Shown: positions 48,776 through 54,505, counted from the stretch's first letter. The stretch: DNA of 64,000 nt from IMGVR_UViG_3300022744_000022:124001-188000; one strand, 5' to 3'. Notes: a model not told the origin generated them from the letters alone. Translations and numbers: made by a program.

Positions 48776-49113
48776 TTGAGGTTGCTGAATCGAACCTCGA
48801 TAGACGAGGTAAGGTGATGCCGCAACACCTTATCCTCACTGACCTGGAGTTCCCGGTTGGACATCTTCGATAGGTACTCGAAGATGTTACCGTCCTGATC
48901 AAGAAGCTTGAGCACCGTTCCAGGGTCGGGATCCGCAGGCAAGTCCACCGTGATCTCATCGTGCGTCATCATCACGATACGGGGCTCTTGGAGCGAGAAC
49001 CCGAGCGGTGCAACAGGGGCCTTTGCGGAAATCTTGCGACGGGGCGCTTGGCCCACAACAAGGCCAACAGCCACTGCGCCCAAGGCGGTCAAGAATCGTC
49101 TTCGCGTGGTCAT
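48757..49113 (-). CDS. Protein with twin-arginine-like leader
   Basis: MTTRRRFLTALGAVAVGLVV. Confidence 0.65.
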   Translation of the reverse strand: MTTRRRFLTALGAVAVGLVVGQAPRRKISAKAPVAPLGFSLQEPRIVMMTHDEITVDLPADPDPGTVLKLLDQDGNIFEYLSKMSNRELQVSEDKVLRHHLTSSIEVRFSNLKWAVAS

Positions 49114-49637
49114 AGGGTGTCCCTTTTCATGTCAGGCCCACGCGGGGTTTCGACTGCTTTCAACCACGGGGTAATGCACTGCCCCTCAGCAAGATCTTCT
49201 GTGTCTGGGGGGACCCAACAAGCCCAAAAGCTGTCTAGGGTAGCGGCACCGCCCACCCCCTCGGTGATGCAGCTCGTCTCCCACTCTTTACCGCAGCAGG
49301 CATACGCGAAGAGCGTTGTTCTTTGTTCCGCAGCTAGAATGCGAAGGGGGCGACACGGTTTTTGACAACTAGGGCAAAATCGACAGTATTGGTTCCAAGC
49401 ACGACGTACATACAGGTAAGCACGTCGTAGGATCCCCCAGTTGTCCTCCATCCGTCCGATCGTTTGATTGCACCGGCCACAAAGCAAACCCCGCACCTGC
49501 CCCGTTTGATGATCGTGATCTACAGCGAGCGAACGGTTTTCAACCCGTTCTGGTTTCAAACAGATCCAACAGCGATCACCGCTGATCTCAACCATTTGAG
49601 CACGATCATCCTTGGACACTTTAGCCTGTACCCTCAC
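49110..49637 (-). CDS. Endonuclease VII-family nuclease
   Basis: CWIC...LAVDHDHQTGQVRGLLCGRCN. Confidence 0.88.
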   Translation of the reverse strand: MRVQAKVSKDDRAQMVEISGDRCWICLKPERVENRSLAVDHDHQTGQVRGLLCGRCNQTIGRMEDNWGILRRAYLYVRRAWNQYCRFCPSCQKPCRPLRILAAEQRTTLFAYACCGKEWETSCITEGVGGAATLDSFWACWVPPDTEDLAEGQCITPWLKAVETPRGPDMKRDTL

Positions 49638-50443
49638 AGCGACACCTCGTGAAAGCCGTTGGGGAAGATCCGCTTAGGCTTGGATCCCTGACGAACCCAG
49701 AAGTCGCCGTTCGGTTGCTGTCCGTTGGGACGTAGCGCACTCAACCTCGGAACGATCAAGGGCAAGATAGTCGGGGGCAACGGTTGACGCTGGCTCGGGG
49801 CTTGGTTCATCGGGCCCACAAGGTTCGACTCGAACTCGCCCGCTGGGTCGCCCCAGATCAACGTGTGGTCTACTCGAACATCACCGGGGACAGGCGGCCG
49901 ACCATCATGGGCATCGACCGTCGGGAAGAACAACCACTTCGGGAACCGGGGCCGGTACCACCAAAGCAAGGGTTCAGCCTTGATCGTGCCCGACCAGCAG
50001 CACACCGCGATGGGCCACCCCGGGTAAAGCTTCTGGTACTCCGTGAAGAAGCCGGGGGCCACCGTCGGGCGCTTGTGCTCCGCCACGTACCCGAGGGCCT
50101 GCGGGATCGCTTCAGCGTCGGTCGCGAGCACCACTGTGTACGAACCTGAATCGAAGATCTGGACCCCAGCCCCAATGAGCGGGCCACCCTTGGTCATCGA
50201 CCGGGACCGCATCCGGCACATCATGTCCATGTCTTCGAGAAGCCAAGGGGTCGCCCGAGTGTCCACGAGGTTGTGGGGCCCCATGGCCTCAAGAGTCGGG
50301 ATCGGGAGGATCATCGCGTTGGGTCCGCGAGAGTTGGCCCGGTTCTGGTACCCGAGCACATGGGCCTCAGCCCCCTCGTGCTGGACAGAGGCCGTGTAGA
50401 TGATGGTGCCGGAGAGGGTGGCTTGGCCGAGCGTGACGCACAT
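49634..50443 (-). CDS. Hypothetical protein (269 aa)
   Basis: GGTGTA 10 nt before ATG. Confidence 0.8.
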   Translation of the reverse strand: MCVTLGQATLSGTIIYTASVQHEGAEAHVLGYQNRANSRGPNAMILPIPTLEAMGPHNLVDTRATPWLLEDMDMMCRMRSRSMTKGGPLIGAGVQIFDSGSYTVVLATDAEAIPQALGYVAEHKRPTVAPGFFTEYQKLYPGWPIAVCCWSGTIKAEPLLWWYRPRFPKWLFFPTVDAHDGRPPVPGDVRVDHTLIWGDPAGEFESNLVGPMNQAPSQRQPLPPTILPLIVPRLSALRPNGQQPNGDFWVRQGSKPKRIFPNGFHEVSL

Positions 50444-50533
50444 GGCTCTTATCTACACCGGCTGGCTCTGTTGAAAAAGGCTCTTGACGCCCCACTAGGT
50501 CTTCTGTCAGTCTCCTGCCTGTAGTGGGCTCAG

Positions 50534-50652
50534 TGGCTGCTGGCCCGGTACGCAACGAAAAGTGGTCTCCGTTCGGCCTCCCGAACTGGATCTGACCGCT
50601 CGCCCTGTCGTGCGTCCTGAAACTGCCGGTGAACCCGGCTTGCCAGTAGCCA
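50534..50652 (+). ncRNA. Structured 119-nt RNA (Y-RNA-like candidate) directly upstream of rtcB
   Basis: 11-bp terminal stem TGGCTGCTGGC/GCCAGTAGCCA with nested inner helices; TGTAGT 8 nt upstream. Confidence 0.55.
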
Positions 50653-50655
50653 AAA

Positions 50656-52074
50656 ATGTCCAAGACCCTTGGGGCCCTGCGTGCCCTGTTGCGTGAGGGG
50701 TTGTCCGTCGAACAAGACGGCAACCTCGTGTGTGTTCGGCCTCTAAACCACCCTGACGGCCTCCCGGCGGAAGTGCTGCTTCCCCGGGATCACCCGCTCG
50801 AACCGAAGGCTCTCAAACAGCTCTCGGATTTCGCACAGGTGCGTCACCCGGCAGGCGGGGAGGTCCTGCAAGCGTTCGCCACCCCGGACTTCCACCCGGG
50901 ATCCGTGGTGCCGATCGGGTGCGTCTTGGCCACCAGCCAAGACATCGTGATCCCCGATGCCATTGGGACCGATATCAACTGCGGAATGCGTATGCATATT
51001 GCGGACTTGACGGTCGATCAGCTCATGGCCAAAAAGCCCGAGTGGCTCAAGGCCATGAAGGGCGACCTGTTGATGAGCACTCGGGACCTTCCGATGTCGG
51101 TGGCTCAGATCAGGGCGATGTTCCGCACAGGACCGTTTGGGTGGCTCGAAGAAGTCGGGAAGCGGCCCTTGGGTATGCTGGGGCGCTCGGACCTCAGGCA
51201 GCTCCAGGGGGAGCTAGACCAGAGCTTCGGGCTCGGGAGCCTCGATGGGGATGACCGTTACGCCCCACAGGAAATGATGCCGGAGGACCGGGACACCATC
51301 CGGGACTGCTTCATCGGCACCATTGGGGGCGGCAACCACTTCGTGGAACTCCAGGTTGTCGAGGAGATCTTGGACAAGGGTTGGGCGTTCCGGTGGGGGA
51401 TCAGGAAGAACCAGATCGCCGTGATGGCCCACTCAGGGTCCCGTCGAGTTGGCATCATCGTGGGGCAGTCCTGGATGCAGCATGCCCGGGAGCGGTGGCC
51501 CCAAGGAGTCCCGCACCCTGAGAACGACATCTTCGCCCTGCACGGCAAGGATGCCTTGGCCTACGTGACCGCGATGAACACGGCAGCCAATTACGCGGCG
51601 GTGAACCGGCTCTTGCTTGTGGAGATGGTCCGGGACCGGCTCCGCCAGAGCTTCCCCGGGCTTGAGCTACCGCTGGTGTTCGACGCCCCGCACAACATCG
51701 TGACCCAAGAGAACGGGTTCATGATCCACCGGAAGGGCGCTACGCCTGCCCACCTGAATCAGCCGGTCCTGATCCCGGGCTCCATGGGACAACCGAGCTT
51801 CTTGATGGTCGGGCACGGCAACCAACGCTTTCTACAGTCAGCCTCGCACGGGGCGGGTCGGAAACTGTCCAGGCGAGACATGCACCGGCTCGACAAGCAA
51901 GGCCTGGACCTTGGGCTCGATGCCGTGGAGTGCATCACGCTCAAGAATGAGCGGCTCGTGCAAGAAGCGCCCGCTGCCTACAAGGACATCGGTCCCGTGG
52001 TGCAGGTGCAGGCTGAGGCGGGGATTGCTTCGCCGGTAGCGAGGATGCGGCCGTTGCTGACGTTCAAGGGGTAA
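50656..52074 (+). CDS. rtcB: RtcB RNA ligase
   Basis: PDFH, DINCG, GGGNHF.E, HSGSR, HRKGA, PGSMG, SHGAGR, EAPAAYK. Confidence 0.93.
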   Translation: MSKTLGALRALLREGLSVEQDGNLVCVRPLNHPDGLPAEVLLPRDHPLEPKALKQLSDFAQVRHPAGGEVLQAFATPDFHPGSVVPIGCVLATSQDIVIPDAIGTDINCGMRMHIADLTVDQLMAKKPEWLKAMKGDLLMSTRDLPMSVAQIRAMFRTGPFGWLEEVGKRPLGMLGRSDLRQLQGELDQSFGLGSLDGDDRYAPQEMMPEDRDTIRDCFIGTIGGGNHFVELQVVEEILDKGWAFRWGIRKNQIAVMAHSGSRRVGIIVGQSWMQHARERWPQGVPHPENDIFALHGKDALAYVTAMNTAANYAAVNRLLLVEMVRDRLRQSFPGLELPLVFDAPHNIVTQENGFMIHRKGATPAHLNQPVLIPGSMGQPSFLMVGHGNQRFLQSASHGAGRKLSRRDMHRLDKQGLDLGLDAVECITLKNERLVQEAPAAYKDIGPVVQVQAEAGIASPVARMRPLLTFKG

Positions 52075-52570: not shown

Positions 52571-54505
52571 ATGGGACTTAAAAAGTACGTTGTTGAGAAC
52601 CTGATCAGCAACACCACGGAATTTCACCTCTACATCCATGAGGCACACGCTAACGCGAGTGACAGCAACTCAGGTCTAGATCCTAACTTCCCGTTAGCCT
52701 CCTGGGCGGCGGCAGAAGCCAAGACCCCGCTCGACACCAAAGCCCATTTGTTCTGGCACATGGGCCCCCACTCGGGAAGCGGCTACACCCTGACCCCGTG
52801 CCGACAGCGCATCCTACGCAACTGCAACTGGTACATCCTGGGTGACGGCGGCGGAAACGATGCACTGGCCCGTAACGTCTTGACCAGCGGCTCCGTAGCC
52901 AGTTCGGCAGACAATGCAATCTTCATCCCCGTCAGTGTTCCGGCGGCCCACGCTTGGAAGGGTAAGTCGCTGCGTTGGACCTCAGGCGCTAACTCGGGGG
53001 CCGGGTTCGATCAAGAACTGCGAACCATCACATCACAGACGGGTGGCATCATTTTGGCCAACCCGGTCGCGAATACGATCCAACCGGGCGACACCTTCGA
53101 GGTCTTCATCGGGACCACGAACCTGTTGCTGCTCGATAGTAGCGCAAACCCGCCGAGCGCCGACCTAGAACCTATATTCAACGCAACAGGGCTCATCCCG
53201 TCTCAAGCTCCCCGAGATATCAGTGCCCCGCCAACCCCCAACTACGTTTCGCAAGACAACTCTACGGGACGTATCGTTCTAGTGAACGTCAATTTGCTGG
53301 GCACCCTGGCGCTACCCAGCTCGCACTTCTTGGTCATCCGCGAGAGCGCTCTTGTCATGTACGGCGTCACCAACATGACAGGGCTTGGGGACGATACTGG
53401 AGGTTCGTACCAAGGCTTCTATCAAGGGGCGGACATCTTGATGGGGTACGATACGGTGCTCACTTACGTCGGAGCAACATTCTCCGCCAAAAACGGACCC
53501 TTTACAGGTTTGGCCTCAACGGACTCACAGTGGGTGGGCTGGGGACGTGGCCACGGTCACGGAAATCAAGCGGTCAGCCAAGATACCCCTTTCCTACTGT
53601 GTCTCGGTGGAAACCACCGGGGCTTCGTATCCTCACCTTCCTTTGTCATCACCAACGGTAGATTGGGTCTCTATGGGAACTCGATCGTTGAGCCCGGAAG
53701 CATCATGGGCTTTGGGGTATCCGGTTTGGGTGGGGTGCTTGAACTCGGCCTGTTTGCCGGAGGGATTTGGGACTACACAACGATCACTGGCGACGGCCCC
53801 TTGGCGTTGGACCTCAGCTCTGCTGTTAACGCAGGGTTTGATTTGGTGAGCAACTTATCTGGTTCCCCTGCGTTGGAGCTGGGAAGTGGGAGCCACGTCC
53901 TTTGGTTGGGAGGCGACATCACTTGTACCCCCGCCACGGCCAACACCGAAGTAGTGCGCCTCTTAGAGGGGTCGAGCTTCACCACTAGCGCCAATCTTAG
54001 CATCACCGACGGTAATGGAGCGCAAGACGTGATGACCATCGGGGGTATCACCAGGTTGACTCAAATCCCGGGCATAAATTATGCCGATGCAGGGTGCAGG
54101 TGGACCACAGAAGTGGGTACACCTGCTGGGGGTACAATCGCGGACTACTCAGACTCCCGTACCGTCCAGACCACGGACGCCACGGTCACCACTATCCTGA
54201 CCTACACAACCCGTTCAGATCTCAGCGTGATCTCAATTCACGCAACCGTCTGGGGCATCGCAACTGGAACAGGGGACGCCGCCAAGTACGTGATCGAAGC
54301 CACGTTCTACCGCGATGGGTCCAGTGTGGTAACCCAGAAAAACGTGGCCTTCCTCTCGACCTACGAATCGCAAGCCGCTTGGAACGCGAGTTTCACCATC
54401 TCGGGGCAAGACATTTGGATGCAAGTGCAAGGCGACGTTGGAACAGTCGTTGACTGGCGCTGCAAAGCCACCATCGATGAGAGCGTCGGCACGGGTGGTG
54501 CCTAA
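52571..54505 (+). CDS. Tail-fibre/structural-like protein (644 aa)
   Basis: Gly/Ser/Thr-rich, beta-helix-like middle, C-terminal beta-sandwich TTDAT...DWRC. Confidence 0.6.
   Translation: MGLKKYVVENLISNTTEFHLYIHEAHANASDSNSGLDPNFPLASWAAAEAKTPLDTKAHLFWHMGPHSGSGYTLTPCRQRILRNCNWYILGDGGGNDALARNVLTSGSVASSADNAIFIPVSVPAAHAWKGKSLRWTSGANSGAGFDQELRTITSQTGGIILANPVANTIQPGDTFEVFIGTTNLLLLDSSANPPSADLEPIFNATGLIPSQAPRDISAPPTPNYVSQDNSTGRIVLVNVNLLGTLALPSSHFLVIRESALVMYGVTNMTGLGDDTGGSYQGFYQGADILMGYDTVLTYVGATFSAKNGPFTGLASTDSQWVGWGRGHGHGNQAVSQDTPFLLCLGGNHRGFVSSPSFVITNGRLGLYGNSIVEPGSIMGFGVSGLGGVLELGLFAGGIWDYTTITGDGPLALDLSSAVNAGFDLVSNLSGSPALELGSGSHVLWLGGDITCTPATANTEVVRLLEGSSFTTSANLSITDGNGAQDVMTIGGITRLTQIPGINYADAGCRWTTEVGTPAGGTIADYSDSRTVQTTDATVTTILTYTTRSDLSVISIHATVWGIATGTGDAAKYVIEATFYRDGSSVVTQKNVAFLSTYESQAAWNASFTISGQDIWMQVQGDVGTVVDWRCKATIDESVGTGGA

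Follow-up and report, generated by a model that had tools for sequence, protein, structure and literature searches.

The window analysed here comprises 64,000 nucleotides (nt) of freshwater-metagenome DNA, taken from a 208 kb virus record in IMG/VR (IMGVR_UViG_3300022744_000022, positions 124001-188000; the record is ~44% complete by estimate), and contains on its + strand a gene for a 472-amino-acid (aa) RtcB 3'-phosphate/5'-hydroxyl RNA ligase (rtcB, 50656..52074; Pfam PF01139, 1.6e-94), preceded by a structured element at 50534-50652. Relatives of this RtcB share 54-82% identity with it in metagenomes and ~55-58% in Myxococcota, and the same protein is encoded on a 291 kb contig. The original prediction had described the element as a Y-RNA-like RNA or a cis switch sensing RNA damage. 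On balance we favour the view that it is part of an rtcB 5' leader which would act as a translational switch, closed by default and belonging to a widespread class, with exposed helix 18 (h18) of 16S rRNA as its candidate trigger. All leader features described below are on the + strand of the window.

The ends of the element pair over 11 base pairs (bp), TGGCTGCTGGC (50534-50544) with GCCAGTAGCCA (50642-50652), and the nested helices ACGCA/TGCGT, CGA/TCG, AGTGGTC/GACCGCT and GTTCGG/CCGAAC were found as described; these helices constitute the minimum-free-energy fold (-59.8 kcal/mol, z = -6.35), and none of 200 dinucleotide shuffles was as stable. The same architecture is present upstream of rtcB in five related loci (L002, L085, L086, L087 and L190), whose RtcB proteins are 73-82% identical to that of the window, and it is therefore more than chance. 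The terminal helix P1 (5' strand 50534..50544, pairing with 50642-50652) has a counterpart in 6/6 leaders, with shifted registers and G-C/G-U changes. The P2 arm (50546..50619) consists of CGG/CTG, ACGCA/TGCGT and CGA/TCG, closing an apical hairpin at 50561-50600; its CGCAC/GUGCG core is kept in 6/6 leaders and its apical part varies, with compensatory pairs detected by RNAalifold at the base of the arm. The hairpin P3, GCCGG-TGAAC-CCGGC (50625..50639), also exists and has a conserved stem, but its proposed likeness to a T-arm does not hold, as the loop differs in sequence and length among the six homologues (UGAAC, UGCUU, CGCGUU, UGAAUC, GGAAU and UUAG) and is thus not a T-loop. A near-identical relative, a 151-nt DNA contig from a lake-water metagenome, differs in the P3 loop (50633 A>T, 50634 C>A) with the P3 stem unchanged, and has one rtcB coding change.

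With regard to transcription, a TGTAGT motif does lie 8 nt before the element (50520-50525) as previously noted, but it is probably not a -10 box, since a conserved promoter is found further upstream; nor is the motif itself conserved (CTTCGT in L086, GTAGAA in L085). We infer a sigma-70-type promoter at 50484..50513, with a -35 box TTGACG (50484-50489), an 18-nt spacer and a -10 box CAGTCT (50508-50513). The six loci share TTGAC(A/G/C), a spacer of 17-18 nt and a -10 box of the form cAnnCT at a constant distance to the sequence GUGGGC, and the promoter of L087 is canonical (TTGACA-17-TATTCT). A simple consensus scan did not call a promoter at 50484-50513. The transcript is predicted to start near 50520 and to include GUGGGC, and no + strand terminator was found between the structured RNA and the rtcB ATG. 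Judged from its sequence context, the structured RNA is most probably the 5' leader of rtcB, because the conserved promoter puts the start near 50520; the leader then spans ~136 nt (50520..50655) and includes the whole of 50534-50652.

The rtcB ATG (50656) is located 3 nt downstream of the P1 stem, with AAA in between and without a Shine-Dalgarno sequence, in agreement with the original prediction. When 12 nt of coding sequence were included, 6/6 phage-type leaders folded by minimum free energy into P1, P2 and P3 plus an additional helix P0, joining UGGGC(A) at the 5' end to codon 2 and the preceding G of the start codon (UG(C/U)CCA); P1 is built on GGCUGCUG in the six leaders. In the window, P0 is formed by UGGGC (50525..50529) and GUCCA (50658-50662), and the same UGGGC can alternatively pair with GCCCG at 50543-50547 (H1). 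The initiation region predicted to be masked in this closed form is 50642..50662, made up of the P1 3' strand (50642-50652), AAA, the ATG (50656-50658) and GTCCA (50658-50662), so that positions ~-14 to +7 are all double-stranded. The closed form has a predicted energy of -56 to -68 kcal/mol across the six leaders, and in the window the 5' segment is predicted to bind the initiation region with -28.3 kcal/mol (z -3.9 vs shuffles).

The 5' strand of P1 contains the heptamer GCTGCTG (50536..50542), which is invariant and the hallmark of the leader class. We compared ~100 upstream regions, out of >7,800 RtcB homologues, and found GCUGCUG at 36-187 nt before the start codon in 96/102 loci of one RtcB clade, with loci in Myxococcota, Cyanobacteria, Gammaproteobacteria, Betaproteobacteria and phages. 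The exceptions were phage operons in which rtcB comes straight after another gene (L001, L003, L004) and three others. Scanning species genomes with a clade-specific N-terminal pattern gave 80 loci, of which 79 have the heptamer within 200 nt upstream; leaders were found in Myxococcota (Myxococcus, Corallococcus, Archangium, Hyalangium, Enhygromyxa, Kofleriaceae), Cyanobacteria (Chamaesiphon, Spirulina and metagenome-assembled genomes, MAGs), Gammaproteobacteria (Xenorhabdus, Gilliamella and a marine MAG) and Betaproteobacteria (Snodgrassella). The heptamer is the most widely shared 7-mer, and where 1 kb or more was available upstream of rtcB it is present on the sense strand at -200..0 in 74/75 loci, vs 2-3/75 in other upstream 200-nt windows. 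A metagenome scan with generic RtcB peptide patterns mostly yielded distant RtcBs, and served as a negative control: only 4/59 loci with distant RtcBs (27-33% identity) had the heptamer anywhere nearby, compared with 8/10 loci with RtcBs of at least 35% identity, 54-127 nt upstream of the start.

This leader class, associated with one RtcB clade in four bacterial groups and phages, is apparently undescribed. The region 50400-50750 of the window had no Rfam 15 match at E<=10, including T-box, ribosomal protein leaders and self-cleaving ribozymes (the only match in the whole window was one tRNA), and the leaders of eight bacterial loci had none at E<=1; the only three Rfam matches in those eight loci were to sub-threshold microRNA models, at L139 891-948, ~150 nt upstream of the heptamer. 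A megablast search of the phage database gave no match, a scan of viral contigs with a 5'-block pattern gave six matches, all chance and located inside coding sequence of GC-rich phages, and a full-text literature search on rtcB with riboswitch, RNA motif, 530 loop, helix 18 or heptamer returned nothing relevant. No convincing further copies of the leader were found in the phage record.

Three observations on individual members of the class are recorded here. The rtcB of Xenorhabdus hominickii (G001:C1:398526-399896, leader in L164) has one in-frame TAG with the leader intact; the gene may be a pseudogene or be read through, or the TAG may be a sequencing error. The record L106 (BNCN01000002.1, Comamonas sp. 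KCTC 72670 by its title) has a Myxococcus-type leader and rtcB N-terminus, and its organism label may be wrong. The myxobacterial leaders (L097-L161) have an extra hairpin ~10-40 nt upstream of the heptamer (alignment columns 10-35), GACGGC...GCCGUC vs GCGGACGC...GCGUCC, which appears to covary between genera and is outside the RNAalifold consensus.

The pairing of the heptamer segment with the initiation region extends beyond the phage-type leaders. In most of 93 distinct leaders the heptamer segment pairs better with the region -25..+12 of its start than with shuffled initiation regions (median z -2.4). The flanks of the heptamer are wholly different between lineages, and the initiation region matches its own flanks: when own and cross-lineage pairings were compared for 23 lineages (double-centred), the own initiation region came out best in 8 lineages and among the three best in 14 (permutation p<5e-5). 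In Myxococcus CGGCUGC-UGACCC pairs with GGGUCA(U)GCAGCCG across the AUG; in Xenorhabdus and Gilliamella GCUGCU and AGGAAAA pair with UUUUCU-AGGU(A/G)GC over the Shine-Dalgarno region; in Chamaesiphon the pairing is with AUG-CAG-CAG-CC, involving codons 2-4; in Spirulina-type leaders UGAACAA pairs with UUGUUCA; and in phages the partner is located at -22 to -3. In every one of these lineages, the partner falls within the ribosome footprint. RNAalifold found the heptamer-initiation helix unaided in 48 Myxococcaceae/Archangiaceae leaders, with 12 invariant pairs, and independently in 11 gamma- and betaproteobacterial leaders. Masking of the rtcB start by the leader is thus a computationally well supported prediction, and with it the part of the original prediction that envisaged a cis switch is favoured, as a cis leader pairing with the initiation region.

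A second fold was found when the heptamer was left unpaired. In 20/24 lineages the heptamer is then enclosed by a hairpin with stem sequences unrelated between lineages, including UGGGC/GCCCG (H1 in the window), GGGCA/UGCCC, CACGUG/CACGUG, GUGCACG/CGUGCAC, UUCCUG/CAGGAA, UUUCUUG/CAAGAAA, CCUCC/GGAGG and GACUG/CAGUC, and the heptamer mostly adjoins the 3' strand of this 5' hairpin. RNAalifold also arrives at H1 as the consensus for the six phage leaders, and one of its pairs has changed from A-U to U-G in the window, a compensatory substitution. Because the 3' flank of the heptamer serves both folds, the closed and open forms are mutually exclusive, and two exclusive pairings are, as far as the predicted folds can be relied on, the arrangement of a switch. 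The energy difference between the two forms favours the closed one by 10-20 kcal/mol, and hence the default state would be off.

The invariance of the heptamer itself is not accounted for by its partner in cis, which varies between lineages (CAGUAGC, GCAGCUAC, CAGCAGU, GGUAGC, and CAUGCAGC with a bulge); the heptamer must therefore be read by something constant as well. We took 16S sequences from the Chamaesiphon, Myxococcus and Gilliamella genomes (L184-L186) and compared the leaders with their reverse complement. In the universally conserved 530 loop of helix 18, 16S rRNA has the sequence CAGCAGC, to which the heptamer is perfectly complementary. The complementarity extends beyond the heptamer in lineage-specific directions: in the window (GTGGCTGCTGGCCCGG, 50533..50548) there are 12 contiguous pairs (GUGGCUGCUGGC) followed by one mismatch and 3 more pairs, giving a predicted duplex of -34.1 kcal/mol between leader and 16S fragment, while there are 13 pairs in Myxococcaceae (ACCGCGGCUGCUG) and in Chamaesiphon, 23 contiguous pairs including G-U in L126, and 22/23 in L137 and L141. 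For the Myxococcus 18-mer, no better trans target than 16S was found. The three long matches are in cyanobacterial leaders (L126 at ~1115-1140, and the same region of L137/L141), where 22-23 nt are an almost exact reverse complement of 16S positions 519-541; in L137/L141 two substitutions relative to the perfect complement create a CCGCA-UUAY-UGCGG hairpin.

Taken together, the switch could operate as follows. By default the heptamer and its flanks would pair with the initiation region (P1 and P0 in the window), burying the start codon and leaving RtcB untranslated, whereas in the open form the 5' end would fold into the short hairpin whose loop displays the heptamer, leaving the initiation region free. 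During transcription the heptamer would emerge ~110 nt ahead of its cis partner, and exposed h18 (CAGCAGCCGCGG) from fragmented, unfolded or immature 16S rRNA might at that stage capture the heptamer together with the lineage-specific flanks, which would keep the initiation region open and turn on synthesis of the repair ligase. We advance this last step, that the leader class is an rRNA-sensing riboregulator in which pairing of the heptamer with helix 18 of damaged, fragmented or unassembled subunits unmasks the rtcB start, only tentatively and as a possibility that is rather more doubtful than the switch itself; translational repression, and above all the trigger, including the damage sensing mentioned in the original prediction, are what we infer from the pairings.

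There are several points which weigh against this model. Within each group of leaders both strands of the heptamer-initiation helix are invariant, so that pair-by-pair covariation is weak and the support comes from the comparison between lineages. The leader 18-mer of Myxococcus has many sites with <=3 mismatches in the genome, 16S being just one of them, and Xenorhabdus, Gilliamella and several others match 16S by the 7-nt core only; 7-mer matches to some part of 16S are not uncommon by chance alone, and the longer matches could be relics of an rRNA-derived fragment. The closed leader, at -67.7 kcal/mol, is favoured at equilibrium over the trans duplex with the 16S fragment, and co-folding leaves the leader closed, which means that activation would have to be kinetic and co-transcriptional. 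Furthermore, the 530 loop is buried in the tertiary structure of intact 30S subunits, and we know of no nuclease exposing it.

Other explanations for the invariant heptamer were considered alongside the rRNA-responsive switch. RtcB seals broken stem-loops, and the heptamer in its 5' hairpin loop, as found in 20/24 lineages, has a geometry like these; it could be a cleavage site for an MqsR-type (GCU-specific) or HEPN-type toxin RNase, with the cut de-repressing translation until RtcB reseals the leader and repression returns. MqsR is specific for GCU, of which GCUGCUG contains two, and an MqsR_toxin gene (PF15723; L190:2533-2856, +) lies directly downstream of a leader-bearing rtcB in a phage-like contig. 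This would account for the sequence invariance without rRNA, but leaves unexplained the extended 16S complementarity of up to 23 nt; the MqsR neighbour occurs in one locus only, other neighbourhoods being different, and the heptamer is double-stranded in the stable closed form, making it a poor nuclease substrate, so that we regard toxin cleavage as rather unlikely. The extended complementarity is equally unexplained if RtcB (as autoregulation) or another conserved protein were to bind the GCUGCUG hairpin loop and shift the balance between open and closed forms. An invariant loop on variable stems is typical of protein-binding hairpins, and the co-inheritance of leader and RtcB clade across phyla and into phages is as expected for an autoregulatory pair; yet no clade-specific extra domain was identified in RtcB, with the Pfam alignment starting from residue 71 and an N-terminus of the window RtcB which looks ordinary in an unaligned comparison with archaeal and E. 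coli RtcB sequences, and we consider protein control unlikely.

The leader might also need no ligand, and provide constitutive damping of translation, mRNA stabilisation or thermal opening, with the heptamer kept by descent and by its double pairing. This is consistent with the very stable closed form and with the invariance of both partners within groups, but the cis partner changes in sequence and position between lineages and the heptamer never does, whereas cis pairing alone would allow co-variation, and the conserved alternative hairpin implies switching; a ligand-free leader thus seems improbable. Least credible of all is a leader peptide, in which the heptamer would be read as Ala-Ala, Leu-Leu or Cys codons and ribosome stalling would sense tRNA damage. 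There is a GUG before CUG-CUG in Gilliamella and Xenorhabdus, with an open reading frame (ORF) ending at or near the rtcB start, and GUG-GCU-GCU is in frame in phages, but no frame or start codon is common to the lineages, Chamaesiphon and Corallococcus lack a start codon in any frame, and the frame is shifted in L087; moreover, the invariance is at the nucleotide level without synonymous changes, which indicates a constraint at the RNA level. The upstream ORF was rejected on these grounds. Also rejected was a reading of TGGCTGCTG as a sigma-54 promoter, as the distance between GG and GC is wrong for such a promoter and the pairing in the RNA shows covariation from lineage to lineage.

The interpretation of the element as a bacterial or phage Y RNA (YrlA-like), binding a Ro60 orthologue and adjoining rtcB as in Salmonella, was not supported. 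In bacteria, rsr and rtcB are known companions of Y RNA genes, and the defining features of bacterial Y RNAs were taken from Chen et al. 2014 (PMC4201824). The absence of a Ro gene from the window, already noted in the original prediction, extends to the 208 kb record, in which a TROVE search found none, and no TROVE gene was found beside the rtcB clade in five bacterial genomes; as the record is ~44% complete, a Ro gene could be elsewhere in the phage. GCUGGCCCGG/CUUGCCAG resembles the helix bound by Ro in metazoans only superficially; GGCCCG is found in the window only and the five related leaders read GUGCCCG. The Ro-binding motif is GNCGAAN0-1G in bacteria and GGUCCGA in animals (PMC4201824); a pattern search of the six homologous leaders did not find the bacterial motif, the GTTCRA/TTCRAW T-loop is not conserved across them, and ARAGORN called no tRNA-like gene at the element. 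The Rfam Y_RNA model (RF00019) had no match at E<=10 or E<=1, which is a weak negative because the model is insensitive to bacterial Y RNAs and stays below the cut-off even in the D. radiodurans control, and for this reason the features of bacterial Y RNAs were tested directly. With the RNA also abutting the ATG without a terminator and pairing with the start codon, a Y RNA is very improbable. The YrlA/Yrn1 RNAs of rsr-yrlBA-rtcBA loci (PMC4201824) are similar to the leader in being ~120-nt structured RNAs next to rtcB with paired ends, a long stem and internal arms, but the leader has no Ro gene, Ro-binding motif or tRNA-like D or T arms, would be part of an mRNA, its 3' strand and 5' end being engaged in predicted pairing with the region of the start codon, and has GCUGCUG as its hallmark.

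Under the favoured model the closest parallel is with T-box leaders (RF00230), in which a 5' leader also base-pairs with a universal housekeeping RNA and toggles between exclusive structures controlling the downstream gene. The rtcB leader, known here computationally, differs in having no Rfam match, in its proposed partner (16S h18 rather than tRNA) and in its output, which would be masking of the initiation region and not a terminator. RNA thermometers and translational riboswitch platforms likewise hide the Shine-Dalgarno/AUG region with an upstream complement and have an anti-sequestor hairpin, whereas the rtcB sequestor is an invariant 7-mer across phyla, with no aptamer-like conserved pocket recognised. 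In eukaryotic IRE1-XBP1/HAC1-RtcB splicing, RtcB acts on CNGCNGN-like hairpin loops cut by a HEPN-type RNase, and the hairpin loop of the leader carries CUGCUG; this is a resemblance only, as there is one motif per rtcB leader and no bacterial IRE1 is known to us. To our knowledge, control of RtcB synthesis in bacteria and phages has been described only for the RtcR-controlled operon. RtcR, a CARF-containing sigma-54 activator, controls rtcBA via tRNA fragments with 2',3'-cyclic phosphate ends (PMC7790460). The proposed input of the leader would similarly tie expression of the RtcB ligase to damaged stable RNA, but RtcR senses as a protein and works at the level of transcription, whereas the leader is an RNA that would act on translation, behind a sigma-70-type promoter and without a neighbouring rtcR or rtcA. 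The RtcB2-PrfH rescue/repair module ties an RtcB paralogue to damaged 16S rRNA (PMC9304027, PMC9223846); it differs in using another paralogue (a ~374-aa open frame adjoining prfH) and in its target, the colicin E3 cut at A1493 rather than h18, and a leader of the kind found with the rtcB clade has not been reported for it.

If the rRNA-sensing model were correct, the leader would do with rRNA what the T-box does with tRNA, and bacteria of several phyla, as well as phages, would have an RNA in place of RtcR to turn on RNA repair. A functional 16S complementarity would make it the first mRNA leader shown to read rRNA status by base pairing, linking ribosome damage to RNA repair and hinting at what this RtcB clade repairs. 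The start-masking leader by itself would give the rtcB clade self-contained control, many rtcB genes standing alone without a regulator, and the fact that a large freshwater phage carries it implies the delivery of a regulated RNA-repair function during infection. The predictions can be tested in the culturable hosts Myxococcus xanthus, Xenorhabdus, Gilliamella and Snodgrassella, and the leader family is a well-defined candidate for Rfam.

The genomic context was searched for genes associated with RtcB. No RtcR, RtcA, archease, PrfH or Ro gene was found beside the rtcB of the window, and the 208 kb phage record likewise contains no RtcA or archease gene. The rtcB of this clade is a stand-alone gene with unrelated neighbours in five bacterial genomes, and a search for a conserved neighbouring gene found none; a self-contained regulator is therefore plausible. 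A link with PrfH was rejected, as the prfH-adjacent RtcB in the same genomes is the other paralogue (RtcB2).

Among the remaining features of the window, there is a single tRNA (10711-10783, +), which is also the sole tRNA in the 208 kb record; it has the anticodon CTA of an amber suppressor and was labelled tRNA-Pyl by ARAGORN. TAG ends 26/86 long ORFs, and reading TAG as sense leaves the longest ORFs no longer, hence genome-wide TAG recoding is not evident in the window. Downstream of rtcB are a 644-aa ORF (52571-54505) and two small ORFs without Pfam or PHROG match, and on the upstream side an endonuclease VII gene (49110-49637, -) and a gene for a 269-aa protein of unknown function (49634-50443, -) are divergent from rtcB.

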